Numbered from the stretch's first letter, positions 18,135 through 42,000 are shown. The stretch is 64,000 nucleotides of DNA from Trichoplax adhaerens (GCF_000150275.1 NW_002060949.1:4222449-4286448); one strand, 5' to 3'. Notes: generated by a model not told the origin, from the letters alone. Made by a program: numbers and translations.

Positions 18135-21100
18135 ATGTTTAAGGCCAAAAAAGCGAAAGCCAAAAAGAAAGCAAAAGCGATTAAAACCCCCACTGCCGAT
18201 ATTGATGACTTTATTCCAACAGAGCAACAAGAGATGCTTTATCAACAACAATCTAACATCGGTTATGACGAAAACATAGAAGACTACCAACAATCACAAA
18301 TGAGTTTTGATGATCCCAACTTCAATTACGCTCAAGATGAAGATGACTATTTGCAGGAACAAGAACAACAGAATTTCGTCGAATCCAATATTATGCAAAT
18401 GGAGAATATTCGTAAATTAAGTATTGATGATGGTTCCGATTTCGGCGATGATGCCACCGAATGGAGCGATGATGACAGCACAGAATTCAATCTCATTGAA
18501 ACTCTTAAAGTGTTGGAAGATTTAAATGGCAAAAATGCACTTCAGTTAACTCAAATACAAAATAAAAGGGTAAGAAATGGTTTAATATTATAATTTTGAA
18601 GGTATTACGGTGTAGTAAGCAATTAGAATGGATAACTGAATAACTAACAAATAGCTAAATTGTATAAAAATTTTATCAATTCTAGAAGACCTGTAACTAT
18701 CTTATAGTAATCACCCATTTTATAAAATTAATATATACAACAGGATGATATTGCCTTTGAAATCAGCCACAAAAGAAACATGATACTAGATGGATATGAA
18801 AAGTTAACTGATATAGCCCTTGCATCTATCTTAGAACACTCAAATAGTGCCCTTCATGTTCACAAACTTAGTGCCATAGGATGTGTACATTTGACTGATG
18901 CATGTGCACTTTTAATTGCAAAGTATTGTCGAAATCTTAAAATTATAAACTTAGATGGCTGCAAAAACCTGACATCTAAAGCTTTGGATGTACTTATATC
19001 TCAATGTGAAAAATTAAACGATGTATCAATGAAAAATTGCAATTTAAAACGCTTACCACATCAATTAGTTCAAAAACTAAGAGCATGGGAAGTTAAAGCA
19101 AAGCGGCAAATCCAAAAAAAATCAAGATACCCGAGCAAAAAAAGTCATGTCAGATCTTTATCGCCATTAACTGAACAGACAGACGACTCTGACCAGCCAA
19201 AATTAAATTTAAATGGTAACCCAATGGCAGAATGTCATGAAGACGTTTTCAAAGCTGACGATGCTTTATCCATAATAAGATATTTAACTAGAGTTGAGAA
19301 GTCCTTGACTTATCACTACAGGTTAGAACTAGAATAGCAATTATCATTTTGTACAAGTTTTTAGTACCATAATGGAGAAGTAAATAAAAATAACACATAG
19401 ATGTCAATTTTACTGCATCTTGCTATTAGTTACTAAGTAGAATTGAGTGTAACTGTAGCTTTTCTAATGTATTAATCTTGCACGTTAGGATTAATGTTTT
19501 TGGATCCGAAGATTCCCATAAAAATTTTGTCATTAGTAAACTGTTGAATCTTAAAAATGTACCCAATGCTAATGAATTTACCGTTCACGATTGGCAACTA
19601 AAAGATAATAAACAGCGAAAGATTGTAACAACTGTAGTCAATTTCGGACTTGAGGTAACTTATACATTGTTTGTAGAAAGTACTTGAAAGGATGATCTAC
19701 TATCAAATTTTATTGTGCTTCTACACGTACAAATTTAGTACCATTACTAAGAATATGAAATTGAATATTTTTCAGCAACACAACCATATTTTTGTCACCG
19801 AAGGTGCGATCAATGTCATCGTAATCAATGTTGACAAGCCTTCGTTTCTGAAATGGATTCAATTAGTGGAAACTAAGGTAACAATAAATTAACAGTTATG
19901 TTAGCTAATGAAAAATTACATTATCAATACTACGCTAAATGATATCATCGAAAATTTAATTGATTTAGATTTGTATATATATATGCGTAAACCCATCTAT
20001 AGGGTGTAATAGATATTGACGCTATCGAATTGATATCATATTAATGTGAATATCCATTTCTCAATAATGTAAAGAAAAATTTTATATTATTTCTTCAGTG
20101 CATGTCACTCTAGAACGAATCAATAAAATTATCTTATAATTTTAATAGATAAAACATTTTTTTTTAGTATCCAAGCAGCTGCTTTATTATTGTCCTCACA
20201 TATGCAAGATCATCTAGAACTGCGGAAGAAAGGATGAATATAATTAAAGATAAATTACAAGATCAAAAAGATTTATTTATACAAAGACTAGAAGCACTAG
20301 TCAATAATTCTATGTCTGAGTAAGTCACGATTATTTCCCATATAAATCAGTTCATATTCGTATTACAGAGATTTAATAGACAGCGCTATCAAAACAAATA
20401 AAAGTTTAGGATTCAAAAATAATTTAGGAAAAATTTATAACGTGAACTTTTAGCACAAAGGAGATAATAAAAAATATAAACAAAACAAAAATTAAACTCT
20501 TAAACATCAGGATTTCGATAGGCTTTTCATAATTTTTTGTCTAATTACTGCATTACAGCTGTGCTTTCTTCTTTCTCAATAATGATTACTCCAAGTACTG
20601 CATTTACACAATTAATCAATGTTAAAAAATAAACAATTACGGTACAATTCTTATAATTTATCTTATAAAGTATTGAAAATTTCATGCAAAATGATGTAAT
20701 TGAGCAAATTACATAAGTAAAATATGAATTTATTATGTTCATTTAAAATTTTACGAGAAAATTTTTACCGAATCTGTAACAGATTTGCTAATAATAACGA
20801 CTTATATATAATTATAAATACTAGTAATATGGTAGTATTTATTAAAAACAGATATAAATGTTTGCCTTTCTTATGTTGTTGCCTTCCACCATTTTTTAAA
20901 GAGGAGATCAGTGGGACCAAGAGACATGTAAGACCTTTTTTCAACAGCAAAAAATCTCTACAGTTAACCATTTGCTTTGGTATGGCATGCCTCAAATTCA
21001 TAATTACGTCATGGTTGATAGCAATAATGGAAAGGTAATCAGATTATGTTATTAAGATGACATCATAGATAACTTCAATAAAAATTAATGATCTAAATAT

Positions 21101-24100
21101 TACCGCATCACCTAAAAATCATAATAATTAATTGCTTATTGGCTTTAGCTAACAATCAAGTATTATTATTGTTTCCTAACCTAATTAAAAATTATCCTTG
21201 ATCGTGCTATTTCTTGTCATAGTAAATATTTCTATAAATTTAAATAAACTAGTATAAATAGAACTATGATTACAATAAATAAGATCGCTAAGCTAACCGA
21301 TAGGATAAAAATTTACGATGTACTAATTCTTTTAAGTAATTTCTAAATTATATTTCTGGAACTTTCTGACGTGTAATTAGGGAATTGAGGGTGTCAGACA
21401 AGAAATAATTCAGTGCATTAATGCAATTTTCCAGCGAAAAGACTGCGATCTGAATATAAATGGAGTAGCTAAACATCTATACTGGTCAAGGTTTCGTGAC
21501 GAATATAGCAAGTTTAAATATCAAGCCAAAAAAAATCACAATAATAACAAGCATATCTACTTTTTAAATGATCTCATATCTGATTTACGCGAGGATGTAC
21601 ATAAGAGAATGGATAAATTTCTATTTGCCTGTGAGATGCTTCATAATTCAGTAAGCAATATAATGATCTTGCCTCTTTTTTCTAATTTCATTCATTGTGT
21701 GTGCCGTCTATTATAGTACTTTTTGATATTCATAATATAGGGAGAGCTCTTTATGACAAAATATAACGACCAATGGTATTTTATACCGGATTTAACATGG
21801 TTATATGAGAGACTAACTGAAATAGGGCAAGGAATAGTGCCCAATGTTGCTATTCCCGAAGGAGTAATGCCACTCACTTTATATTATATAATTAAAATTA
21901 ATTTCTCAATACCTTATTTAGAAATTAAGACATAAATAGGAATGAAACAATTTTTTCATTTAATTTCATATCGATTTCTAATCAAATATCTCTGTAGGAT
22001 CAAATCATTATTAATCTAGCAAAAAATGCTGGAATATCAGCTGTAATGTCAAACGTTATCAATTTAACTCGCTCATTAACTGATCTGACATGTTTACCAA
22101 ACAGTCCTGCCAAACCGTTGGTAACTATACGTTAAAATTTTTTGTGTATAATTTGGCTACTAATATTACCCAAAATAGTAAAGCAGTTAATATTCGATAC
22201 TTTTACAATCTGTACCTAACATATTATCTAAATACAGTGCTCAATATATTACTTTTCTGAATAATTTTAGACATTGTTGTGGGAAGATTATCACCCTAAT
22301 GAATATTTTTATGAACAAACTTATGAAATAATCAGTTACAGTCCTGCATCGTTGTCGGTTTTAAAGCAAATTCAATCTAATCTCATTCGGCTAACACAAA
22401 ACGTTCACCATTTATGGAATGATGGATTGTTATTCAGTTTGGGCTACGTAGAATGTCTACTATTACTCATTGAATCTGAATCAACTCCAACAGATGACGG
22501 CTTAGTCAGCTTAAAAATTTCAGCGAGATGTAATGCAATACCTGATGCGGATGCAGCAGAGGAAATACAAAGTGGACTACGTCAGACGTTTATTATGTGT
22601 TGCTACATCATTGAAGCAGCTTTTGAGCCTTTGCCAGGTATCGCAACTAAGGTTAGCAAAATTTAGCAGATATACCAATACATCACTTATTCTCAGATTT
22701 TTATCGATAAGATTTTTCTATTAAAAATTATTAAATTTGGATAGACAACGTTAAAATCTAATGTAGCCAAAGAAAATGACATTGAGGGACAATTAAATCG
22801 GCCTAAATTTGATGAAGGTAATAATTTAGGCACTAACTCTTAAGCTTTAGATCAATATAATTCGCTTTTCTAAAATCTAATAGGTGCATTTGGGTAATTA
22901 ATATCTTAATAGTTTACTGTTTAATGAAACAGTCTACGCTCTATCTGTGACAAATGTTGTAGGAATTGATGAAAAGCTTTATATGGTTTGCTTAAATATC
23001 ATAAATCGTTAATATCAATCGTTGAATCTTTCTTGTTATTTCATTCTAAACATAAAGTTGATATTCCTGCAATATGTGGTCACGAACTGGAAAAATCAGC
23101 TTCAGAGATAGTCTGCGTGCAATGTCAACCATATTCATCCGAAAATAACCAGCAAAATATTAACAAATATCAAAAAGAGAAGATGTAAATCTAATCGCTT
23201 TTCTCGTTAGATATGATATATAGAAACCTAATTTTGTATATCTTTGTAAATATTAGATGAGTTAATCAGTATCTTATTTTAAATACGCGTAGATAATCAA
23301 TTAAAACCAAATCGTGATTATGTATAATCATAAGTTCCCTTTTTTTCGATTGATCGATAGATCATCTTGTACTAATTGCGGTCGATGCAATTATTGTATA
23401 CAGTTTATGTCGGTAAGACAGCATAATATTAAGACTTTAAAAGTACACGTATATGATAAAGTAGGTCTGATTTATTAGAGGATAGCATTCTTTATATTTC
23501 AAAATCGAGGGAAAATTATCTCTAATTGGTTCATCCGTGAATAAACTAATACAGATTTTCATGTAAATAGGATGTACGTAAAGAAAGTGCTACTCCTGCA
23601 TTTGTTAATGACTGGTCCAGAGCTTTTAATTTTCAACAAATTGGAAATATCTTAAAACATCCGTCTGATAAGGAGATTATTGATGAAAGACAGGTTGTTG
23701 TATCTGATCTCAATTATAGTATTGCCGTTAACAAATATCCCTTGAATTTTGTAACTGGCCGGATTTTTCAGTTTACTATCTTGGATATCGCCAATGTTGA
23801 TTTTATCTTAGGATTAGTTACATCATCCTATGATAAAACATCCCGCCCTGGTTTAACAGATTCATCTTATAGCATCGTGTTTACAGAATCCGCTTTCTAT
23901 GCTAATAACCAAAATATGGGAAGTTTGGCTTTTGATATTGATCATCTTTGTCCCGGTGACCAACTCAGCATTATTGGTAGATATTCAGCTGATAAAAAGG
24001 TAAGGCAACGAGTTTGCTTCTAATTCTAATCTTAAAAGCTGGGTTGAATATAGTCTAGTACACTGTACAATATCATAGTCACCTGATTTGATATTGGTGA

Positions 24101-27100
24101 TGACGGTCAATATTTTGAAAATGTAAATTTAATCGATTCTAAGAATCCGGTTTCTAAACCAACTGCAATTGCAATAGTTGTATTTTCGAACAAAATTAAT
24201 GAAGTAGCGCTCAGATTAGTTTCCAAAAGTCAAACAATACAACATACACCTTTAGTTCAATCATTTCTTTAACCATTAATAGTATCTTATTTTTATTTAC
24301 ACTGTATGATCATAGAAGGAAATTGTATTTAGCAGAAATGGATTAGTACTGCTTGTCGTCAATGAACCTGACAATAAAGATTATTATCCGATAATCCATT
24401 GCGTTGATACCACCGCAGATGATAGCCGCATTATCCTACAATTTGAAGGCAATACAATTCCGGTAAGCTATATCTCATTAATTCATTATATTCTATTTAA
24501 AGCCGAAAATGATTAAGCAATTACCCTGTATAATTTTCGTATATTGTCAAATCATATATTGACTATTTAAGAATTTAGTAATTAATACAGTATACTCGAA
24601 ACATGGTGCCTGAGTTACATATTTAGTAGAACTTTTAGCTTCTCTACTAAATTAAGATTTAAAAGGGATTATTTGAATATAGTAATAATGATAATATTTA
24701 GGTTCTGGTAGTTATTCAGAAAGACGGGAATAAAATCACCATTACTTAACTTTCTAAAGCTCTTTGATAAATACATATTAATATTTTTTGCTATAGATAA
24801 CTCAAGGAGCAAAATTTGTCACTTGGGAGAAAGGCATGAGACTAGAGGCTAAAGATCGCTTGAATCCCAGCTTGATGTGTGTTGCGACGGTCGATGATGT
24901 CAATGATAATGAACTTTTAATCCATTTTGATGGTTGGACCAGAAAATATGATTACACTTGCAAGAGCACTTCAACAGATATTCATCCAATTGGTTGGTGT
25001 GAGAATAATTATCATCGGCAATTGGAACCCCCCAAAGGTACCTAAATATTTACGTTAACATCTACGATGACATACGTATTGCAATCTCGGCTAGTTCTAA
25101 TGAATTTAACCTATAATTTCTATGAATTATTTCTAAAAATTGCTTTAAAATCCAATAATTAGGTGACAATAAGCCTGACTTTAAATGGGCTCAATATCTA
25201 GAAAGTATTCAAGCTGTCGCTGCCCCTGTAGAGCTTTTTACACCAGTAAGATATATGTCTGCAAATCGTAAAAATTATTTTATGTTATTATGTGCTGACA
25301 TTAAATAATATTTTATTAAACCATAAATTAATAAAATAATACATACGGGTTAACGGGTATGCTTAAGTATCTTTACTTTTACTGAATAATAGGTTCAATC
25401 CTGGTCATAAGAGTTTAAAACCAACATTTATACATAGAGAATATGTACTTGAGATGTTTTTAATAAGCGATTTCACTCATCAGTAATATAAAAATAATAC
25501 TTCTTATGGATTACATGATAACATTTCTGATTCTTTAATCAGGAACAACTTGGCGAAAAAGATCCCGCGAAGATTTCTTTTTATGCCAGTACTCTTCAAA
25601 GCTGTACTAAACTCCAAGGAGATTTTGGAGGTAATTATAACAAATACACAAATATATTGTACAGTCCAATTGAAGATCTAAGAACGTCAGTTGCATACTT
25701 TCTAGAGAAGTACTAATCTATGCAATGAACAGATAAAAGAAAATGAAAGTATATTGTATAAGTTAGATTACATTTATAGTATTATATTAGGACAGTTGGC
25801 GGTTTAAATATATTTACAATACATGGGCAGCTGCTAGGACGTTATTGTAATTTATACATTGATTTCACGCCTATTTAGGAATAAAAGTGACTCAATCTCA
25901 TCAACACTCTAATTTTTTTAAATAATCTTGGTTAAAGTATCACGTGTACATCGTTTAATGAATGAAAAAACTGAAAATTCCATAAAAATATTCCTTGATA
26001 CCATTACCCGTGATACAGCATGTCCATTCATGCTCTACTTTCCGAAGTTAGACTCTTTTGAGGATCTAAATCTATTGAGCTGGAGATTTTGGCGAAACAA
26101 TTATAAAAAATATATTAGTCTACTATGTACTGGTTCAGGCAAGTATTTTCGCTCTCATATAAAACCCATAAGTCGTAAATTTGCAATTCTCACTTACAAC
26201 CAGTTAATTTGTCTTTATTGCTTCCTTCTGTTACTATTGCATAGGATGCTTTGATGCAAAGGAAATCGATATACATGGTTTTGAAGAGACTGGCCATCCA
26301 ATTGCAGGAGCTGACTGCTATTCGCAATGGAGCCAACAATCCATTGTCATTATATGGTTAATTAGCCATATTATTTTAGATTTAATTAAATTACAGGTAT
26401 CAAAATATAAATTAAACTGTAATTTACTTCCTCAATTAAATTATTTAACTATAATTACAAGCTTTCATTTACTTAAAATCTATGATATTAAAATCCTGTT
26501 AGTTGATAGCAAACTTAATGTAAATTATTTACTATATTGCGTTTTCTTGTATAAAGAACGTCTATAAAATATCTAGTAAAGCGCTCAGATTATTTGGTTT
26601 ACAAGAGGATAAAATCGAAGATGACAAAGTACGTACGGAAGAATCTAGTATGATATTTGCAATTGCACAATAGTTATTTTATTGCATATATCTAAGCTAT
26701 GGATACAGCTTTTACTCGATCGGAGAGTAAAAGGTAAAGTATTTGATTACGATCATCTAATATTTTCTACATATTTCTCCTGTTCCTATATTATAGTTTG
26801 TAAAGCAGGCAGAAGTAATTTTGAATATGATAACGACAATGTTGGATGTACCTGCACTCAAGATTTGTCAACGTCTGGATCGAAATTCGATAATGAAAGC
26901 TATTCCTGTATGTATAATGTCTCGAAATATAAGATTTAATAATTTATGGAATCATTCAATCAAAATAATTATTAACTTGAATTGCTGACGGATTAATACA
27001 AAGACAATTAATACTTTATTTTCTCAACGATTACGTACGAAATTATGGTATCCTATTCTTTCATCTTATACTAGCCCTAATCATCACAAACCACTTTGAT

Positions 27101-30100
27101 CAGTTTTCATTTCTCTAGTAATCAAAATTAATTATATTGACTGTAGGAGATAGAAAAGCTAACAGCTGAGGCGATAGAAAAGTGTGCTACCTGCAATGCT
27201 GTAGAAATTAAAGATAGATATGCTTCCAATAAGATTCATTATATTTGTCCAGCCCATACTTTGGCTATTGCTGGAAATGATCAAAATTTGGAAGAATTCC
27301 CTTCGGATACAATATTGTCACTGAATAAATTATGCAATATGAAAATGTATAATAATAAAATCGCCGAAATACCAGAGCAGGTCTTTCAGCAATTCTCGAC
27401 AACCTTAACTAATATTAATTTCAGTGGTAATAAATTAAAGGAACTGCCACTGGGAATGAAATGTCTAAAGAATATTCAACAGATATTTATAGGGTATAAC
27501 GAAATTACCAATATTCCAGAAGGGTTGCTTAGCGCTTTTTCTGATAGCCTGATATCTCTCGACTTATCCTCAAATTTCATTCGTCGATTACCGGATGATA
27601 TCGGAACATTAACCAACTTAAAAATGCTTAATTTAGCTTACAACCCCATTGATCAGTTAAGCAATAATATTGGCCAATTGAAATCATTGGAGGCTTTAAA
27701 TCTTACTGGTCACACTTTAACTTACTTGCCTGATACATTTTCCTCCTTGCAAAATTTGTCAAAACTGTCTCTTAATGGAGTGCCATGGATTCAAGTAACA
27801 TCGCAAGATTATTTGCATAATAAAATAATTACTAAAGAGACTATTGTAGATCTGTTGATGCATCCATCAGAACACGTAAAGGTTAATGCTTACACGAAAG
27901 AGGTAGGATATTTTCGGTTAACGAAAATTCGAGACGTAGATTAGGTCTAATTATAATTCTTTTTAAGATTAATTTTTAGTTATACACTAAACTGTTTGTT
28001 GTATTATTTAGCAAATTGAAAGTTTATTCGATGAATGTGATACCAATGCCAACGGTATCTTGGATACACAAGAAATGATTAATCTAAATGCAAAGTTATA
28101 TCTTAGCTTTCCTCGATTACAAGGCAGGAAAGAAAATGAAGAAAATGAAGGGAGTTTTCTGAAGAATCTTCAAAACTTTACGAAGTTAAAAGAGTTACAC
28201 CTGACGCACTTAGCGCTCTCCACCATCTCAGAAGAAGCTATAAGCAATTTAACCAGTTTAATCAATCTTAATTTATCTGATAATCCTAAACTAACTTCAT
28301 TGCCTGGTGTTATATCCATGTTACCGCTAAAAGAATTATCGTTACGGGGAACACACAGTCTAAAGACACCGCCACCAGAAATCAAAAATCGTGGGTTTCA
28401 AGCCATTATGGGATATCTAAAACGTTTACTGACTGGCTCCGTTGAGTGTAAAAGAACAAAGTTAATGATGGTTGGCTTAGGAGGCGCTGGAAAGACAAGG
28501 TTAGCAGGCAATGATTATTAATTAAAGAGTATCAAATGTCCTTTAGTATCTTTTAGAGTAGTTATTAAAAATTGACATCAATTTATTGCCATCAACCAAT
28601 TTTTGAAGATGGCTTGGGCTATTATGTATAACTTATTGCTGAAATTTAGTTTAACTGTAATTGATCATCGGTTTAATGATGAAATTTTTTACGCTACTTT
28701 AAGCTTGGTAGAAGCTTTGTTATCACCATATGGCCAAATATATGAGTCTGAAGCAGAAAGAGAAATCACAGATGGAATTGATATTGATACTTGGACAGTT
28801 AAAACTGATGAAGGCAGAATTGAATACAGTATATGGGACTTTGCTGGTCAAACATTGTACTACAACACTCACCAGGTAAAATTGATATCTTTGCCTACTT
28901 TATGTCCTAAGATTTAAGTTTTAATTCTGTAAATTTATCAAAACTTTCGCTAGAATAAAAATTAAGTACTTAAACTATTATTAACACCCGAAGTATCCAC
29001 ATTTCTCGTGTAGTTTTTCCTTTCCGATCGTGCTGTCTATTTCTTGGTATGGAATACGCGCTTAGGTCATGAACATGCTGGTTTAGATTTCTGGCTAAGT
29101 TCGATAGCTTGTCACGCTCCTAAAGCACCAGTTTTTGTCATTGGAACTCATTGCGATATGGTAGATTGCTTATAAGCTTAACATGATTTCATATCGTGTT
29201 GAATTGATTTTATTGGTCTTTTTCTGAGAGTCAAAATAAATTACAGTTATACATAAGCTTTGTTCCTCGTCATTGAGGAGTTATAAATAGGCGTAATTTC
29301 TATTAGATTTAAAGATCAGTTAACCTTGCCGTAGTGAAATATTTCCCTAAATGATCCTGTAATTAAGATTAATTATATCTTATCCCGCAGGTTTCTGTCA
29401 CTGAATTACCTGAAGAGGTCATGAAAAATCGATATCAGCAAATTGTAGGATTTCATTACGTTAGCTCATTTGTTGGCACGGTAAAGAACACGATTTTGCT
29501 TTCCTTTGAATGCAACTTGCAATCAGAAATCAATCTAATTTCCCATCAAATGATACTTAAGACCTGTTTATAAATGAATCTCTAGGGCATACCCAAATTG
29601 AAAGATTGTTTAATAAAAGAAACGCTACAACAAAAGTATATGGGAGAAAAAATTCCTCAAGTTTGGCTAAATTTAGAGAAAGCAATATTAGAGTATGTAA
29701 ATTAAATTATATGCTAGTAATTGTTTTACTTTTTGGCTACCTTTTATCTTTTATTATGAGATACTAGATAGCTTTAACATAAAGTTATGTTTACTGTTCA
29801 TTATCAAAGCTGGATAGCTTTATTAATTAATATTATACAAATATATAATACCTTTATAATTGTATTATTACGGCTGTCTATAGTTTTATAATTATAGAGC
29901 ATTTATGCCAAAATAGTAATTTTCAAATATATGAAAATTGGACTGGTTCCATAATACTATACAGTTATACGCGTATTCTAGATTAATTTACCTAATCACT
30001 ATCGCTTAGGTAATTACTATCTTCCTTAGTTTAGGCTTGAATAATCTTAACTAATCCTAATTATGCTTGAAATTAGGAAAGGAAATACAGTCAAAGTGCT

Positions 30101-33100
30101 TACCTGGAATGAAGTTACTGAAATTGCCAGTTCAATAGGAATATTTGACAATACGGAGGTATTTTATTCCCATAAATAAACCCTTCCACATTTTATTTAT
30201 ATAAAATAATTATGATATTATTCTCATTATTACATCATGTCTACCGTAATAAAGCTAGCAAATAAGGTATCTAATTCGCCTTAAAAATATATCTGGTTTT
30301 GCATCTTTATGATTGATAGTTAAGACAGGCTATCGGATTTCTCCATGATCTTGGCTCTGTACAACATTTTAATAATATAGCGCTAAGAGATAGAGTTGTC
30401 ATCGATCCACAGTGGATTGTTGATGCAATGGCTTGTGTAGTCTCAGTTCACGAAACACCTATTAAGGTAATTGGTATATACTTATACTATACAGTTACAG
30501 ATGCCATAAATTATTAAGTAAGCAGGATATATTATCATAATATCAGCCTGCTGTAAAAGAAACTATAACTAAATCTCCTCACCAATATGATTTTTATTGG
30601 TCCACAGGAAGGAAAGTTTAAACATTCCGACATGGCCAAAATATGGAAACAGTATGATAAACAGCATCACCAATGGTTATTGAAATTGACAGAACAATTT
30701 GATTTAAGTTATGCTTTACCCAAACAAGATGTTAATCTTGTTCCATGCTTGTTACCAGGAACTGAACCTAAGGTATAAAGATCTTTCTATTCTTACCATT
30801 AAATTATATCTTGCTTATCCAAGAATATCTCAAGTAACATCGTCTATTTCAGTTTGATTGGATTGAAGACATTGATAATAGTAATATCAAAGCGACGAAG
30901 ATGAAATACATATTCGAATATTTACCAGCAGGACTTTTTAATCGTGTACAGGTCAAGATATTAACGAAAATGTAATATAATTTTGATAAATATTCGTTTC
31001 TAAAATCATCCTCTACAATTATATTCTGCAGGTCAGGCTATGTAAATTTACTGACAATCAAGTTATATGGAAAACTGGATCTTTATTAGTGAAGAATGAA
31101 AACAAGGCCGTAATGAAGCAGTTACGGTAAAAAATGGAGTTGATATTTTAGTTATCTAAGTCCTTAAAATAAAAATTTTCTTAATTGTATTCAAACGAAA
31201 CGTCATAATTGAAACTTATGACCGAGTAACTAAGTACTCGTATATGATGCATTCGGCTGTACAATATTTTATTCAGAATTACTGTATATATTTAATTTCA
31301 TGATGTATGCAGTTGTAAAGTTATGTATATCGTATATTTTTAGGAATACCGATAACCTATTGATAGAAGTTCGCGGTATATCACCTAATAATCTTCTCTT
31401 CCTGATACATGAAATCTTGGAATCGCTAATAGCAGAAGCTTTTCATGGTATCTCATATGAATATGAGGTGCCATGTATAGATTGCTTGAATCAGGTACCA
31501 GATAAAGACTTTAAATTGTTTTAAATAGAGTGTGTTATAAATATATGTATTGTGTCTCTGTTGAAAAAATTGACATAAAATTGTTATGGGGTCATCGCTT
31601 AGGGTTCACGAGATCCTTCCATGTTCAGATCAACAAGAATACGACGAGCTTCCGAACTAAAAGCTGCGTTTTTGCAATGCGAACACAACTTTCATAGTGT
31701 ATCAATACATGAACTGCAATGTAAGTACAAATCTAATATTAAATTACTTGCAATTTATGATCATCTTATGCTATAATATCAGTAGCGATTTAGCTGCTGT
31801 ATTAGTCTACAATAATAATTTTAACATAGTACGACATAAAATTGATTACGACATCTTAGTGATATTTATAGCAATTACATTACAATTATTTTCCTTCTGA
31901 TCTGCCTAGCTGTTATTCCACCGGAATCCCCAAATGAATTTGACTTACATTTAAGGAATTCAATGCGAACTTTGACGAATCTTTCCGCTAGTTACGAATT
32001 AGATGCTTATATAAGTACTTTAGATAGTGATACTGGTGTACCAGCAAGGATTTACAATGATTTATGTTCAAAAGGATATTCTTGGTCAGTAGGATTTCCG
32101 TGGAATTACTATCGCCTATAGGAATATTTATGCTAAAGGCATCTTCGCAAGAAAATATGTATATTAAATTTCCGGATATGTTTCTTATCTTTTTTTCACA
32201 GTTATCGAAAGCAATCTGAAAGCGGCAGTCAAGATGCAGATTTTTTGGCTATTAAACAGTCTAATGTACGTGTTAATGATTCATTTTAAGATCAGTTACA
32301 ATATTCTGGAAATATAAATAATTGGCAAGAGTAACTTTACAAATCCCTATGAGACGTAAATTCCAGTAAACAATGCTTATTAATTATCATATAATAAATT
32401 AGTATAAATAGAAAAACTGATACGTTGGAAAACTTTAATTAACTACGTTACTAATACTCCTACTAATGACTCTGCTCAACCAAAGATTGTCATAATCTGT
32501 ATGACGGATGAATACATTAAAGATGAAAAATGTCGCTTGGAATTGAGCCACATCACAGCATTCTTGCGGAAACCTATTGCACTCGTTATTATCAATAATA
32601 GCTGGGAATGGAAAACAGATAGTATAGGCATGTTGATGGCTGACGAAGTAAGTTATAATTTGAAATTGATCTTACTTATCGAGCTTTCTGATCGTGTTTT
32701 CACTTTTTGATATCATTTTCCTTATTTATAAATTCTCTGACTATAAAATTAAAGGTATACATCGACATGTCAGACCTTGATAAGTATGATATCAAATTTG
32801 ATGAACTTGATAATCGAATTAAATTACACGACAAACGTAATCGCCAGGTAGACCAATAACTGCCGCAGTGTTCATTAGCATACCGTATCATTCTCTTTGA
32901 TGATCATATTTATAGTAAAAGCCATCGATGTTAATGCCAAAGTTAAATTATTTACATTAAATAGAGTTTATTACTATTGGTACAATTAGGTGAACTATGG
33001 TGATTGTTTCATTAGTTATTCATGGTCAAATTCAGAGCTAGCGTGCAAATTAGGGACGGTTCCATTACCTGGAGCTATTGGAAGAGGTTATAAATCTTTC

Positions 33101-36100
33101 TCTATATCTATTTTTTTATTGAACTCACAGCCACTGGTATTGCCTTAAATAAGATCTTAGTTAGTTATCCTTACACTGTATATTAAATCCTTATACATTC
33201 TTTTGTGTTTGATATCAATTCTTTATTATAGGAGATCCAAGGCAGTTAAAGGAACAGATTGAAGAAAGGGGCATTTCATGTTGGATTGATGTTAATAATG
33301 TCGGGAAGGTATATTAACCTGTGGATGGAGTAATGCTATAGCTAATGGTATTATGCAAGAATAAAAATTGCGATAAAAGCCCCCAATATCTTTTTTGCTA
33401 GACCGGTCTATTCGAAGATATTGCTGCTGGATTACAACAAGCCAAGGTTATGGTAGCCTGCGTTTCAGATGAAGTTAGTACTTCGTCATTGCTTACTTCA
33501 AATACAGCTAATTAATTTCAACTTATATTGCTATTATTGTAACTGTTGAGGTACTGATTGAGGGGATGTTAAAAGGCTTACAATTTTTAATTATTACCAT
33601 TGACTACTGATAGATAGAATTGAATAGCTATGTACAATAAAGGCGTAGTGTTCAGTAAGGACTACTTCCAATTCCTCAAAATACCCTGTTAAGATCAATA
33701 GTAATCTAGCATGATACTACAGTAAACTTATGATAGTCTTACAGAATGTTTAAGAATTGCATACTTACTTTGTTTTATTGCGTTTACTCTTGAAATATAG
33801 TATGTAAAATCCAGAAATTGTCTCATGGAATTCCGCTTTGCTCTAAATAGTTTAAAATTACCAGTTATTTTAGCAGTTGTTGGCACCGGTTACCAATGGT
33901 TGTCGACAGAGGTAAAAAAAAATGGCAGAATACCCTGTTAAAGGAACTACCAGAATATTAGATATAAAATTGCTATGATATTCAGTAACATTTTATGCCA
34001 GCAAGTATTCTTGAAATATCCTAGATTATCTAAGATTTTACATTTTCGAGGAATTAAAAAATTCTTTCACTTTTTTTCACTTTAGGTCGGAATGCTTAGT
34101 ATAAGCTTGCCAAAGGTATTTTACTTCTTGATTGTTTATATACTTATGCTGTAAATACATTACTTAAATTGGGGCTATCTAATTTAACTTTTGGTATTTC
34201 TCAATTTTTAGATTAATTTACAGGATGATGCAAGCGAGGATAAAGTCAATCAAATAACCAAATACATACAAGAAGAAATTAGAATATCTGATAAATCTAA
34301 AGATACCGCGGAAGCAAATACTACAGAAGATACGCTAGAAATGAAGCATTTACAATTTCTGGTATGGATGAATAAAAAATAATATGAACAGTACCAAATT
34401 AAGTTAATAGCCAATATTCTCTTAGGTGAAATCAATCTTACTATAACCATTTCAGTCGAGTCATGTAATATGTATCACAACATTTTTTATTCTATCCATA
34501 ACCTATAGGAACTCTTGGAACTGGCTCAAAGAAATCTTTTAAGGCAGATAACCAATATCGCTGATAGTATTTTATCTACTCCAAAACCTCGATTATTAAT
34601 TCTTGATTGGAAAGTGGAAGAAACGACTTTAAGTCAGGAAGAGCAAGAAGGACTAAAGGTTTCAATAAAATTAGAATATCATAAAGCATTAAAATTATTT
34701 TATTTCACTAGGAAACGAATAATTCCTACAATTAGTTAATTACAATAATATTTGCTATTTGTGATCTCATCTTTTAGGATCCTGATTTGGGATTTTACGT
34801 AGACAACAAAGTATTTTTTGTCAAATTTTTGTGTGAGCATGAGGAGGTTAGATGATAATAAATATTTTTGGTTAGGTGTTTACTAGATACTGCTGGTAAT
34901 GACTTGTAAAAAGCAAATAGACAAACACATGTGTTCAAATTGAAAATTCTAAAAATGCGATGTTAATATAATTTAGGGATGGCATTTGCCAGCAGGAAAT
35001 TTCGAATATTTCAGTTTTGGAAATATTACCGATGTGAAAGAAGCAGCAAAAGCTATTTCTGGTTATATCGCGCGTGTTATGTCATTGATACAACATAAGG
35101 AGTTGGAAATTAAAAGTGTTGCTGGCATCGAGGGAGAGGCTTTTATTGATTTCCTTGTAAAGGTGCCGTATGGATTACTGTACTGTGATTGAACTGATTT
35201 AGCAGCTTTGAGTAGACGTGAGATAGAGTATTGTGTTTTCAACATTATATTGATTTGATTTGTACGAGTGAATTTATTACTATCTTCGAATGAATCTCGG
35301 TTTATAAGTTTAGATTCTTTCAATACTACAGCTAAAGTTAAATAGATTCTATGCTTGTATATTATAACATACTGATATGCAAAGCGGAATTAAAATGTTG
35401 GGTATTTAATTGATAATAGCAATTTAATATTCATATAAGCGTATATACGTTTACTAACAGTGAACTCATAATTTTATAAATACATATATATATATTTGCT
35501 ATTTGATAGCTTGCTGAATCATCTGATGCTGGTATAATGGAATCATATCAAGAGTTATCGGAATTTCTAAATGAGATTAGCTGGCCAGTTGCTAATAGTG
35601 GACTTTTGAGGTACTCAGAGATGATACATAATGTACTTGATAGTTACCGTTTTTGTGTCTAGGAAATGGTTAGAGGGTACTACCAACGTATTTTTTTTTC
35701 ATAGAAGGAGTAGCATTATTACGATGAAAATTTTATTGCTCTTATTTGTGTTACTGTAGAGTATATAATATTATACTCTCCTTTATATTTATATCCAAAG
35801 CTATATAAAATTATTTTCAATAGGTGTCAATTACCGAACGGGAAGGTATCATGGCTTTGCCGAGAGCATTTACAGAGTACAGGAGCGACGGTCATGGATG
35901 ATTCTAGTGCCTATATTATTGCAGATCCAGGTCTTGGCTCATTGCCTTTGGAAATTCATGAATCGTCCGAAATTGAAACACGAAGGGATAGCAACGATGA
36001 TAAGCGAGTGTATGAAGAAGATGATGATATCAGTAGCGTCGATAAACAAGAGAACGAAGAAGGTTCTCACTCTGTCGATGAGGCGGTTAACGATTCAGCG

Positions 36101-36637
36101 AAAGAAATAACCACAGTTAGTCCTTTTGAAAATAGTAATGAAAAGAGAGATAGTGAACCTTTAGTGACCCAGGAAGAATATATCAAGGGGCAGCAAAATG
36201 AAGTAGAAAAATCAACTGTGGCGAAAGAAGATGATGATGTATCACCGGCAATGGATACTGCATTCGGTGATGATAATCAACCATCACAAGAGAATATGAG
36301 AAATCGCGAGGATGCATCACCACAGACTGAGAAAGATGAAATTGATAATTCATCGCCAGTAGAGGAGAAAGGCGAAAATGATCATTCATCGCCAATAGAG
36401 AAGAAAGATAAAATTGATAATTCGTCGCCAGTAGAGAAGAAAGATGGAAGTGATGATTCTATCTCAACCGGCAAGAAAAAATCGCTACCTGAAAACTTAC
36501 CCGAAGAATTAATTCAATCTACGGGAAAGCTCAGCCTCAATGATGCGCCCACAACTCCTAGTCCACCATTGAATCCTCCTGCTCCGTCTAATCCGACTAG
36601 AACAAGAAACGTTTCTAGGACTTGTATATTACTGTAA
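18135..36637 (+). CDS. Giant tandem ROCO protein: LRR-ROC(dead)-COR-Cys-rich-SPRY-MBT-CTD / LRR-EF-hand-LRR-ROC-COR-TIR-TIR-CTD-acidic tail-CaaX
   Basis: About 50 exons splice in frame from MFKAKKAKAKKK (18135) to RTCILL* (36637). The intact ROC has G1 GLGGAGKTS, G2 ITDGIDI, G3 WDFAGQ, THQFFLSDRAVY and G4 GTHCD; COR has FLHDLGSV..VIDPQW and LPAGLFNRVQVRL. The exon at 27147-27901 joins the end of cassette 1 to the LRRs of cassette 2 with no stop. Confidence 0.8.
18744..19321 (+). other. ROCO cassette 1: cysteine-containing (FBXL/AMN1-type) LRRs plus LRR-ROC linker
   Basis: LSAIGCVHLTDACALLIAKYCRNLKIINLDGCKNLTSKALDVLISQCEKLNDVSMKNCNLKRLP; linker LNLNGNPMAECHEDVFKADDALSIIRYL. Confidence 0.8.
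19489..22650 (+). other. ROCO cassette 1: degenerate ROC plus COR
   Basis: Colinear similarity to the intact ROC-COR of the same gene: RINVFGSEDSHKNF, TTVVNFG, HNHIFVTEGAINVIVIN, YPSSCFIIVLTYAR, GIEGVRQEII, MLHNSGELF..YFIPDLTWL, HHLWNDGLLF. Confidence 0.7.
23571..24461 (+). other. SPRY-like domain in ROCO cassette 1
   Basis: FQFTILD..FILGLVT..RPGLTDSSYSI..PGDQLSIIG..EIVFSRNG..YYPII matches the SPRY pattern (xPGW..SYGY / GDxIG / xFTKNG / LYPxV). Confidence 0.7.
24797..25245 (+). other. MBT (malignant brain tumour) repeat in ROCO cassette 1
   Basis: WEKGMRLEAKDRLNPSLMCVATVDDVNDNELLIHFDGWTRKYDYTCKSTSTDIHPIGWC..LEPPKG..FKWAQYLE..AVAAPVELF. Confidence 0.93.
27261..28440 (+). other. ROCO cassette 2: typical LRRs with an inserted EF-hand
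   Basis: LxxLxLxxNxLxxLP repeats; canonical 12-residue loop DTNANGILDTQE at 28039-28074; linker LKTPPPEIKNRGFQAIMGYLKRL. Confidence 0.9.
28450..31730 (+). other. ROCO cassette 2: intact ROC GTPase plus COR
   Basis: KLMMVGLGGAGKT|S, WDFAGQ, GTHCD, VSSFVGT|GIPKL, YMGEKIPQVWL, COR-A/B motifs, and the Cys/His cluster PCIDC..QCEHNFH. Confidence 0.95.
31995..34280 (+). other. Two tandem TIR (TIR_2/SARM-bacterial-like) domains
   Basis: TIR1: DAYIS..IVIICMTDEYIKDEKCRLEL..KPIALV..YIDM. TIR2: DCFISYSWSN..GISCWID..GLFEDIAAGLQQAKVMVACVSDEYVKSRNCLMEF..LPVILAVV. Confidence 0.85.
36329..36455 (+). repeat. Coding minisatellite, 36-bp (12-aa) unit, about 3.5 copies
   Basis: EKDEIDNSSPV-EEKGENDHSSPI-EKKDKIDNSSPV-EKKDGSDDS in the last ROCO exon. 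Confidence 0.85.
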
Positions 36638-39040: not shown

Positions 39041-42000
39041 ATGGATAAATTGAAAGTAAGTTCATTTGCAGTATCCAGTTCTTATATCATGGCAAGAGAT
39101 TCAACTTGTACCATTGCTTTGCCTTCTTTAGATTGGTTACATGGCATTAGGGTTGATTTATTTCTTCACCCTTAATGTCCAATTTTCTGATGGATTTTAC
39201 CTACCTGGTGTTGCACCACATGAATATCAAGATCGAGACAAAGTAATCATTAAGGTTAGTATCAATTTTCAATCGCGATCCGTTTGTTCATTTCATCACC
39301 ACGGAATTCCACCCACTGTCAATAGGTCAAGAGTAATCGCGTCTATTTTGTATCCATTTTTCGAGCAATAATGCACCATGACCGATTACCTAGTTGTATA
39401 GCCTTGACGATCAAGTTGCAATCATCAAGTCTACTTTTGTAGAGTACAGTAGTCGGTGGAATTTTCTTGAATTCAATTTTCATGCAACCGTTCATAGATG
39501 CTGATTTAACCAGTCAGTACATTGGCCTTATCCCTTGCAAATGGATGATAAAATTGCAAATTAGTCTAATAAGAATTGTGTCGTTTGCTTGTCGTAGTGC
39601 TATTGTTCTTCATGATCGTCGTGCACATGACGATTTGATCCGATAAAACTCGATAGGAGTTTACCGGCAGTGATGTTTCTATACTCCAAGTTAGATCTTG
39701 ATTGAAATAGACACTAGTATTCAAGTATTACTTCTCTCTCAGGGACTTTGAAAAATGTAATTTAAGACAGAATACAGCCCCTGGTAATGGTATCGTTAAA
39801 GGATAAACCCACCGAATAGATGACAATAGTCATTGAGATAAATTTTAAGTTGCCTTTTCGTCTGACGGTAAATAGATCAGTAATCAATTGTCAATTCTTC
39901 ATTTGCTTCTTTATAGGCTGTCAAAATGACCAGTATTAAGACCGCTCACTTGCCTTATGATTACTACTATTTACCATTTTGTCCTCCTGAAGGAAAAAAG
40001 GAATATAAACCTGAAAATCTTGGTAAGTTTCAATGATGTGTATCTCTATATAGTTGGTTGACATGCTTGCATCAATTGCTCGTAATCATGTTGCATCCAT
40101 ACGCAATACTTGTACAATGATGATAGTGCCATCAATAAAATAATGCCATAGTACAACTACGCTACCACCACAACATAGCGTTCAATTAAATTAAGCAACA
40201 CCTTAGACATGTAAACACTCTGTAACTCCAGCCAGTAATACTTTAATGACTTGTAATTGATTATGAGCCAGTAAATTATGATCGAATTCATGCCATAACT
40301 AACTTTGTGAACATTTTATCTGCAAAAATTATTTTTCATTTTTCTTCCCATTTCATGTTTATTCATTCTTTCCAATTCAATATTTTATTTGTAAACATAT
40401 TTCCACTGTCTCATTATCAAATTAAAAATATGAGTCAGTAATATACAGTACAGTAGATAGTTCAGTAGCGCATCGATGATTATGTAGAACACTTGCCTAT
40501 TACTTGCTTTTGTATTGAATCATCATTTCTCTATAACTAGCTCATTTTTATATCAGAGTAATATAAACTCGTGTAGATGATTTTAATTTTAACTCAGTCC
40601 TTTCTACTATACAGGTGAGGTATTACGAGGTGACCGAATTGTCAATACCGCTTACAAAGTTAGTACACTCTGATAAAGAATGACCTACTGATATCAATGA
40701 ATAATTGACTTTAAGCGTTATGCTGTCTACGATATTGAGATAGTTCGTCTATTGAAAGTTGATATTCGCTATTCAATTCATTACTATCCATCATTAAACT
40801 ATAGTTGAATATGAATAAAGACAAACCATGTGAAATTTTATGCGGATCAGCGGACAAGCCTATAACGATCAGTAAAGATGATGGCAAAAAATTTATTAAA
40901 TTAATTAAACAATCTTACAGTGTACACATGTAAGTATTACTCTAAGTTAATGATCAATGTGGCTAAGCTAAAATAACTTACAAGCTACTGTTAACCTATT
41001 TGTATTGATATCATTCCCTTTTATAGGATTGTAGATAATCTACCAGTAGCTACCAAATTGGTCACTCAAGACAATAGAGTAAGTCAACGGATGGATAGAG
41101 GCCTTAATACCGTCTATTGCAGGCGTTAAGTTAATATTTCAACAATATTTTAACAAATGGTAATTATTGTAATGTATAAATGCCAATTGTTAATGCTTTG
41201 TGTTATAATATGTGTGACTTATAAAGATTCAATATGAACATGGTTTCAAACTTGGTGTGATGTCCAACAATGTGGTAAGTTAATGCCTCGTGACGATGAT
41301 CTTAGAGCCTTGCTAAGTCACGTATTGAAAAGCCATAAATAGATTCGAAAATGTATTCTTTATCTATTCCATCGTAATGACTTCAGTGTAGAATAAAGAT
41401 TATTTTATTACCGATAAATGTTACAAACTAATTTGCTATCATTGCCATCAATTTTGAGAGGATCATTATAATTAAATGAGGACGTAACGAATACCTTGTC
41501 TATACATTATAGGCGTATCTATACAATCATATACAATTTAACATCAAAGTCCATCAAAATAAGGAGAAGTAAGAATGTTAATGTCATTTGAAGCATTATT
41601 TACCCTTATAGCCATCGCCTTAATTTTTCTATTTAAAAACATAATCCGTGTATTGTTTACTCCTTTTATGAATGTATACTAAGCGTAACAATTTTTTTGA
41701 TAATTAGAAAAACTTTCCGTATAGTAGGATTTGAAGCTGCACCTCGCAGGTAAGGCAGCACTTAAATAGTTAACTCGAATGAAGTATTGTTAACTGAGAA
41801 CTTTTCGATTTATGCCACAACTAGTTATGCGTTAGATCAAATTAAGAGTGGAAAGGGTTGCAAATTACCGCAAAAGGGAACTTCTGTTCCTGGTCAAGCC
41901 GTAAAAGCTGGTATGTTTTTATAGGTCACTGATGCACATGTTAATTTCACTACACTTCGACATACTATAGAATCGCGATAATTAATTTACAGGCATTCAT

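Follow-up and report, generated by a model that had tools for sequence, protein, structure and literature searches.

Organization of the locus

The 64,000-nucleotide stretch of the Trichoplax adhaerens genome analyzed here (GCF_000150275.1 NW_002060949.1:4222449-4286448; hereafter the window, with positions counted from its first letter) carries on the + strand a large gene in which two tandem TIR domains, TIR1 and TIR2, are encoded directly 3′ of leucine-rich repeats (LRRs) and of Roc, COR-A and COR-B domains. The window is AT-rich (~32% GC) and its open reading frames (ORFs) are all short, as expected in an intron-rich eukaryote. The exon chain was read from the stop-to-stop translation of the + strand together with the DNA itself, and exons were searched, aligned and translated singly; the fold and superposition data reported below are those of a homologue model rather than of the window's own spliced TIRs. 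Homologues are denoted by P numbers, among them P0002 from the amphioxus Branchiostoma lanceolatum (3282 amino acids [aa]; annotated as "MFHAS1"), P0007 (3088 aa) and P0005 from Elysia (846 aa).

A first-pass annotation of this DNA had placed a Roc-COR module upstream of tandem TIRs. Exon-wise Pfam searches bore this out, as matches to Roc (two exons), COR-A (two exons) and COR-B follow one another in this order 5′ of TIR1, which identifies the gene as a ROCO gene. The nucleotide-binding motifs G1 (GLGGAGKT), G3 (WDFAGQ) and a G4-like GTHCD are all intact in the translations, and the Roc-COR module, with its predicted GTP binding, is apparently competent. This order of matches and the readable Roc motifs argue that the layout of ROC-COR followed by TIR-TIR is real. 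The upstream features are as follows.

27147-27941 (+): LRR exon of the second ROCO cassette; Pfam LRR_8, E=5.8e-19; collinear with P0002 1756-1940
28012-28518 (+): open segment with an EF-hand-like stretch (weak EF-hand match), LRRs (LRR_8, E=3.2e-07) and the Roc P-loop ..GLGGAGKT; 44% identity to P0002 1972-2133 (tblastn)
28576-28914 (+): open segment with a Roc exon, switch II WDFAGQ; Pfam Roc, E=5.9e-05
29014-29172 (+): open segment with a Roc exon, G4-like GTHCD (LRRK2-type THxD); Pfam Roc, E=1.7e-04, profile positions 75-119
30320-30775 (+): COR-A exons, open segments 30320-30514 and 30569-30775; Pfam COR-A, E=2.6e-10 and 6.5e-12
31234-31521 (+): COR-B exon (open segment); Pfam COR-B, E=1.9e-08

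Eleven exons with AG acceptors, GT donors and consistent phases throughout were read at 31910-34658 (+). The acceptor at 32486 was confirmed by homologue matches, which start at query residue 24-27 (corresponding to base 32486). The TIR1 motif ..TDEYIKDEKCRLEL lies within the single exon 32486-32647, and its Glu codon is GAA at 32540-32542, where the first-pass annotation had located it. The Glu codon proposed for TIR2 was also found in place (GAA, 33828-33830); the motif that had been quoted around it, ..SDE followed by YVKSRNCLMEF, is interrupted between its two parts by a 327-bp intron separating exons 33402-33473 and 33801-33911. The two βA boxes differ as had been described, with a canonical CFISYSW in TIR2 (32990-33086) and a degenerate DAYISTL in TIR1 (31910-32084). 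A 30-nt micro-exon at 34086-34115 codes for the αD region just past βD of TIR2; it was missed by tblastn, yet is demanded by the homologue alignment.

31910-32084 (+): TIR1 exon a (T1a), linker, βA (DAYISTL), αA; AG/GT, phase; aligns to P0005 up to residue 208, including βA 176-179
32202-32265 (+): TIR1 exon b (T1b), βB, BB loop, αB; AG/GT, phase; reading of the DNA
32486-32647 (+): TIR1 exon c (T1c), βC, αC with the Glu, βD; Pfam TIR_2, E=0.015; aligns to P0005 232-285
32540-32542 (+): TIR1 Glu codon GAA in CRLEL; column of P0005 L250, sixth residue of helix 245-257
32755-32847 (+): TIR1 exon d (T1d), βE, αE; AG/GT; tblastn to P0007 residues 2541-2583
32990-33086 (+): TIR2 exon a (T2a), βA box CFISYSWSNS; 68% identity to P0002 2766-2793; family-invariant F, S, Y, W, N, S present
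33232-33308 (+): TIR2 exon b (T2b), DPR motif, αA, βB (CWIDV); tblastn, P0005 alignment, family alignment
33402-33473 (+): TIR2 exon c (T2c), BB loop, αB, βC, end ..ACVSDE; tblastn, P0005 alignment, AG/GT
33801-33911 (+): TIR2 exon d (T2d), αC with the Glu, βD; 68% identity to P0002 2844-2880; gapless to P0005 402-438
33828-33830 (+): TIR2 Glu codon GAA in NCLMEF; column of P0005 E411 and Dimorphilus A0A7I8VYT1 E1833
34086-34115 (+): TIR2 exon e (T2e), 30-nt micro-exon VGMLSISLPK; AG/GT, phase 0; aligns to P0005 439-448
34212-34361 (+): TIR2 exon f (T2f), βE, αE, linker; AG/GT; alternative in-frame acceptor 12 nt downstream
34509-34658 (+): first exon of a conserved post-TIR domain (ELLELAQRNLL..); tblastn to P0002 2937-2984 and P0007 2751-2798
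36623-36634 (+): C-terminal CaaX-like box CILL and stop (..SRTCILL), in ORF 35894-36637

The gene ends in a C-a-a-X sequence that is common to 12 of the 22 homologues checked, in the form S/T-K/R/Q-A/T/V-C-a-a-X (e.g., ..SKACSLM, ..SRACTVM, ..SQACLLL). This conserved end suggests a prenylated, membrane-anchored protein.

The first post-TIR exon is conserved from Trichoplax to amphioxus by tblastn. In the AlphaFold2 (AF2) model of P0005, the corresponding domain (residues 484-745) is well folded, with a predicted local distance difference test score (pLDDT) of ~90, and lies between TIR2 and a disordered tail; the Pfam scan of P0005 gave no match over these residues.

Family assignment and homologues

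Exon-wise Pfam searches of ten pieces of the TIR region gave a single weak TIR_2 match (T1c, E=0.015), since no exon is longer than 54 aa, and the identity of the domains was settled through homologues. T1c alone matched 85 proteins at E<=1e-3 among 1.84 billion representatives, most of them twice, with two TIRs each, and many of them 2000-3300 aa long, which argues for homology of the TIR1 region rather than chance. When P0002 and P0007 were used as tblastn queries, the window was covered collinearly from 18786 to 35983. The Pfam architecture of these two proteins reads MBT or PLAT, then LRR-Roc-COR-A-COR-B-TIR_2, with at least two TIR_2 stretches, and TIR_2 (PF13676) scored 52-94 bits in the collinear homologues, mostly over at least two stretches. 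Both window domains are identified as TIRs by these Pfam matches and by the two TIR folds of the P0005 model, to both of which the window exons align. Named homologues come from Branchiostoma lanceolatum, Haliotis, Pecten, Ylistrum, Elysia, Lingula, Dimorphilus and Tubulanus, i.e., from amphioxus, molluscs, a brachiopod, an annelid and a nemertean.

Exactly two placozoan TIR proteins with LRRs, of ~3000 aa and with no transmembrane domain, have been reported and placed in class ecTIR-DC 14 II (Kamm et al. 2019, PMC6321704), the ecTIR-DC 14 class being taken, as cited there, from Gerdol et al. 2017. "ROCO TLR-like" genes of this kind, with ROC and COR plus MBT or EF-hand domains, have also been described in the Aplysia immunome (PMC9334734). 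By alignment, the window gene is a member of this invertebrate giant ROCO-TIR family, ecTIR-DC 14, with which it shares ~3000-aa collinear homologues, the LRR-Roc-COR core followed by two C-terminal TIRs, and MBT/EF-hand accessories; the lack of a transmembrane domain is a family feature given by Kamm et al. (PMC6321704). The sole difference concerns the TIR1 Glu, which both Trichoplax copies have and which is L, I, A, M or F in 26 of the 26 collected ROCO-type homologues. We rejected the Toll-like receptor (TLR) label of the Aplysia paper, since the LRRs are part of a cytosolic ROCO cassette and no transmembrane segment is present according to Kamm et al.

A paralogue that also has the LRR-Roc-COR-TIR-TIR order is located on this contig, 2.6 Mb upstream (C1408:~1568100-1578300), and the two genes of this layout found in the genome equal the number reported by Kamm et al. 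(PMC6321704). The paralogue is 41% identical to the window gene in TIR1 and 58% in TIR2. Its TIR1 box, DVYVSYCEDD, is less degenerate than that of the window gene, and both of its TIRs have the Glu (CRSEF and CIMEF). Another protein with Glu in both TIRs, P0001, was considered as a gene model of this genome and discarded, as it reached 37-50% identity at best anywhere in the genome.

The TIR-TIR cassette was also found in proteins of 700-1100 aa, fused to Tudor and sometimes to EF-hands (P0004, P0012, P0020, P0038, P0049 and P0058). P0004 clusters with a protein of the coral Stylophora, and the N-terminal TIR of the Tudor-type proteins has Glu or Gln. With MBT as the accessory reader of the ROCO type, the cassette is repeatedly paired with "Royal family" methyl-lysine reader folds.

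The faint exon-wise TIR_2 signal (E=0.015) might be taken as the mark of a pseudogene, or of a decaying or misread gene composed of chance ORFs. This explanation is extremely improbable and was rejected, given that each of the 11 exons has an open frame, canonical splice sites and a phase that fits its neighbors, and that TIR2 is 50-66% identical to that of distant animals; collinearity with full-length homologues also extends to the conserved CaaX end.

Position of the two glutamates in the TIR fold

In SARM1, E642 is the catalytic Glu of the TIR NAD+ hydrolase (NADase)/cyclase, and the first-pass annotation had assigned both window Glu residues to this helix position. A profile built from TIR2-type sequences, including the window exons, was searched against the sequences of the PDB and matched Cat1, plant TIRs, a SEFIR domain and MyD88. 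It aligned the family Glu with that of WCLDEL in a plant TIR (7xoz) and of WCWDEL in the NADase Cat1 (E=3.6e-4). SARM1 was absent from this search at E<=1 and was recovered by structure only.

The structural evidence comes from the AF2 model of P0005 (mean pLDDT 80, mostly >85 over both TIRs), which contains two β-α TIR folds with Z scores of 15-16.7 to solved TIRs. The columns of the two window Glu residues (P0005 L250 and E411) each fall on the sixth residue of αC in this model. VIA-align superposed P0005 TIR2 on the SARM1 TIR with Z 15.5 and a root mean square deviation of 2.4 Å over 127 residues, at 20% identity, while P0005 TIR1 gave Z ~15.3-15.4 with RUN1/RPV1 and Z 14.0 with SARM1. Counted from the Glu column, the alignment extends for another 58 residues in the P0005 model and likewise for 58 in SARM1 (E642 to residue 700). 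Both Glu residues are thereby assigned to the catalytic αC column, as had been proposed, with the match to SARM1 E642 obtained by offset arithmetic on a homologue model.

Unequal conservation of TIR1 and TIR2

An ungapped alignment pairs T1c with the last part of T2c followed by T2d and T2e (14 of 54 positions identical) and places both Glu residues in one column; in the family alignments, this column is that of the invariant Glu of TIR2. Among 57 tandem-TIR homologues, the C-terminal TIR has this Glu in 55 and the N-terminal TIR in 13, the latter otherwise showing L, I, Q, M or A. We defined as ROCO type the 26 homologues with COR-B directly upstream of the TIRs, all named ones being bilaterian. 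In this set the Glu of TIR2 is present in all 26 proteins and that of TIR1 in none (L in 13, I in 5, A in 4, M in 3 and F in 1). Among ROCO-type genes, the TIR1 Glu is kept only in the window gene and its Trichoplax paralogue.

The interpretation given in the first-pass annotation is borne out in part: both TIRs are real and both have the Glu, but they are not equivalent. TIR2 retains 21 of 22 near-invariant family positions (F-S-Y-C-W-x-N-S, DPR, W-x-D, S-x-x-Y-x-x-S-x-x-C-x-x-E, P, G and W), compared with ~7-8 of the 22 for TIR1 in a hand alignment. Likewise, TIR2 is 50-66% identical to bilaterian TIR2 domains and TIR1 30-36% to its counterparts. Judged from these alignments, TIR2 is a conserved and constrained domain that looks like an enzyme-type TIR, and TIR1 looks like a diverged partner.

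A possible Roc-COR-controlled TIR enzyme

The gene structure, domain order, fold, Glu column and conservation pattern are established here. What the stretch encodes is the effector end of a giant ROCO protein, probably anchored by a prenyl group, in which LRR, Roc, COR-A/B and the TIR1-TIR2 pair are followed by a C-terminal domain, an acidic tail and the CaaX box. Its TIR2 is marked by the SARM1-like FISYxWxNS box, the DPR motif and the invariant SxxYxxSxNCxxE. In the model that we tentatively favor, giving it somewhat less than an even chance, nucleotide-dependent Roc-COR dimerization would bring TIR1-TIR2 pairs together at the membrane, where contact with TIR1 as the partner would open the pocket of TIR2, which would then cleave or cyclize NAD+ via its Glu; catalysis, switching by GTP and the part played by TIR1 are inferred. 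The placozoan TIR1, still endowed with the Glu, may keep some activity. It is quite unlikely, in our estimate, that placozoans keep an ancestral ROCO TIR-TIR state in which both TIRs would be catalytic and form a pre-assembled, asymmetric intramolecular pair for Roc-gated NAD+ cleavage at a prenyl-anchored membrane site; if so, no animal TIR enzyme gated by a small GTPase would have preceded it.

Published data bear on this model. Hurieva et al. 2026 (bioRxiv 10.64898/2026.04.20.719644) assigned the catalytic-position residue by structural alignment in ~16,000 eukaryotic TIRs. In their Table S3, both TIRs of Trichoplax adhaerens B3S268 are listed with GLU, the second listed TIR of Dimorphilus A0A7I8VYT1 with LEU, and those of Capitella R7TDS1 with MET and GLU; the Dimorphilus and Capitella entries are consistent with the Glu column assigned here. 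B3S268 corresponds to the window gene or to its paralogue 2.6 Mb upstream, both of which are Glu/Glu, and its TIR #2 is the representative of the cluster that holds the tested TIRs (Hurieva et al. 2026). Entry 137 of their Table S4 is the Dimorphilus A0A7I8VYT1 TIR at 1746-1890, with catalytic residue 1833, and entry 136 is the matching TIR from a Rotaria protein of 2825 aa. A0A7I8VYT1 is our ROCO-type homologue P0023 and residue 1833 is the Glu of CQMEF, such that entry 137 is the TIR2 of P0023, which is ~51% identical to the window TIR2.

Several observations weigh against catalysis. The direct data are limited to entries 136 and 137, which in Escherichia coli yielded no cyclic ADP-ribose (cADPR), 2′cADPR, 3′cADPR or NAD+ depletion (Hurieva et al. 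2026). TIR1 lacks, by hand alignment, most of the family-invariant pocket motifs (SYCWxNS, DPR and CWxD), and its Glu is dispensable in 26 of 26 ROCO-type homologues. The Trp found four residues before the Glu in WxxxE motifs, a usual but not a diagnostic trait of enzyme-type TIRs, is replaced by K in TIR1 (KCRLE) and by N in TIR2 (NCLME). MyD88, which is non-enzymatic (Z 15.9), and Hydra TRR-2 (Z 16.7) are structurally no more distant from P0005 TIR2 than SARM1 is, so that the fold alone has no power to separate an enzyme from an adaptor.

The negative result obtained with orthologous TIR2 domains is weak, because in the same assay only 12 of 61 Glu-bearing animal TIRs scored (Hurieva et al. 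2026) and because the domains were isolated. Nor does the missing Trp exclude catalysis, since active TIRs without it exist, and we rejected it as a disproof: the Latimeria TIR, with the nearly identical motif SRNCKKE, depleted NAD+, the Clupea, Adineta and C. gigas TIRs produced cADPR (Hurieva et al. 2026), and Lingula is also among the active TIRs without Trp. The Latimeria, Clupea and Adineta TIRs have the same S-R-N/S-C-x-x-E motif as the family, which we count in favor of catalysis, as we do the fact that both Trichoplax paralogues share the TIR1 Glu in spite of 41% identity in TIR1. Roc and COR are named among the domains of cADPR-producing TIR proteins in the legend of Fig. 3 of the same preprint. 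The idea of a GTP-switched NADase, put forward in the first-pass annotation, remains plausible with GTP control as a putative element, and it is weakened, for the isolated domain, by the negative E. coli result with the two orthologous TIR2 domains.

We rate a scaffold role without enzymatic activity only slightly below the enzymatic model. Both TIRs could serve in assembly or as adaptors, in the manner of MyD88 and TLRs, with a TIR scaffold nucleated by the ROCO protein and a Glu that is structural or involved in partner binding. The inactivity of orthologous TIR2 domains in E. coli, the presence of Hydra TRR-2 and MyD88 among the best structural neighbors and the free replacement of the TIR1 Glu in ROCO-type homologues all agree with such a role, as would the TIR2 motif SDEYVKSRNCLMEFRFAL, which we take to be similar to the corresponding motif of MyD88. 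At the position of the catalytic Glu, MyD88 has a Gln. Presence of the Glu in 55 of 57 homologues, from placozoans to amphioxus, would be unusual for adaptor TIRs, and the assay, with 12 of 61 animal TIRs scored, is too insensitive for its negatives to count for much. Most TIRs of TLRs and interleukin receptors are without the Glu (Hurieva et al. 2026). In the literature, members of the family have been regarded as putative adaptors or regulators (PMC6321704).

The preprint assay covered three cADPR isomers and NAD+ depletion only, and the published negative would be irrelevant to TIR2 if its chemistry lay outside this set. TIR2 might then be an enzyme with another substrate or product, such as ADP-ribose-derived adducts, NADP+ or nucleic acid-derived 2′,3′-cyclic nucleotide monophosphates. 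The invariant Glu and pocket motifs would fit this explanation. Against it, the motif of TIR2 is closest to those of cADPR-making or NAD+-depleting TIRs; we consider it unlikely.

A further TIR was noticed elsewhere in the genome, at C1410:4252082-4252309 (-), within a 263-aa open frame. Its box is FISYQWD-like and its Glu is in ..SSSCSKEI..; in this it is similar to the Latimeria/Clupea type, for which the preprint found activity.

Relation to known systems

The window TIRs resemble that of SARM1 in their fold, in the αC Glu at a matching offset and, for TIR2, in an FISY..NS-type βA box. They differ from it by an N or K in place of the Trp, and their control would be exerted by Roc-COR instead of ARM/NMN sensing. 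Pfam detected no ARM or SAM domain in the window exons or the homologues, which argues that the gene is not a SARM1 orthologue. A module for nucleotide- or ligand-switched oligomerization joined to a Glu-bearing TIR is also found in the plant TNL resistosomes RPP1 and ROQ1 and in bacterial STAND or Argonaute-linked (SPARTA) TIRs, and SPARTA and plant TIRs are among the structural neighbors of the P0005 TIRs (Z 14-15.6). Here, by contrast, a Ras-like Roc GTPase and a COR dimerizer, in place of a STAND ATPase or an Argonaute, precede TIRs that are C-terminal and tandemly duplicated. The ROCO core is shared with human MFHAS1/MASL1 (LRR-Roc-COR). TIR domains, an MBT domain and a second ROCO cassette are not known from MFHAS1.

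Already on record are the gene family, its occurrence in Trichoplax and the fact that one Trichoplax member is Glu/Glu. Our analysis makes a modest addition: the invariance of the TIR2 Glu, the presence of the TIR1 Glu in two Trichoplax genes as against 0 of 26 ROCO-type homologues, and the Tudor-fused cassettes. If TIR2 or the TIR1-TIR2 pair were an NAD+ enzyme controlled by Roc-COR, it would link ROCO GTPases, the outputs of which are mostly unknown, with enzymatic TIRs. Such a link in one of the earliest-branching animals would provide a tractable model for what ROCO proteins switch.

Other features of the window

Between ~37960 and 38900, both strands contain short ORFs rich in STVQYSTV- or TVLYSTV-like peptides, suggestive of an element of repeated or low-complexity sequence that separates this gene from the following one. 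The next gene downstream (~39141-40036, +) is presumably a member of the TM9SF (nonaspanin) family.

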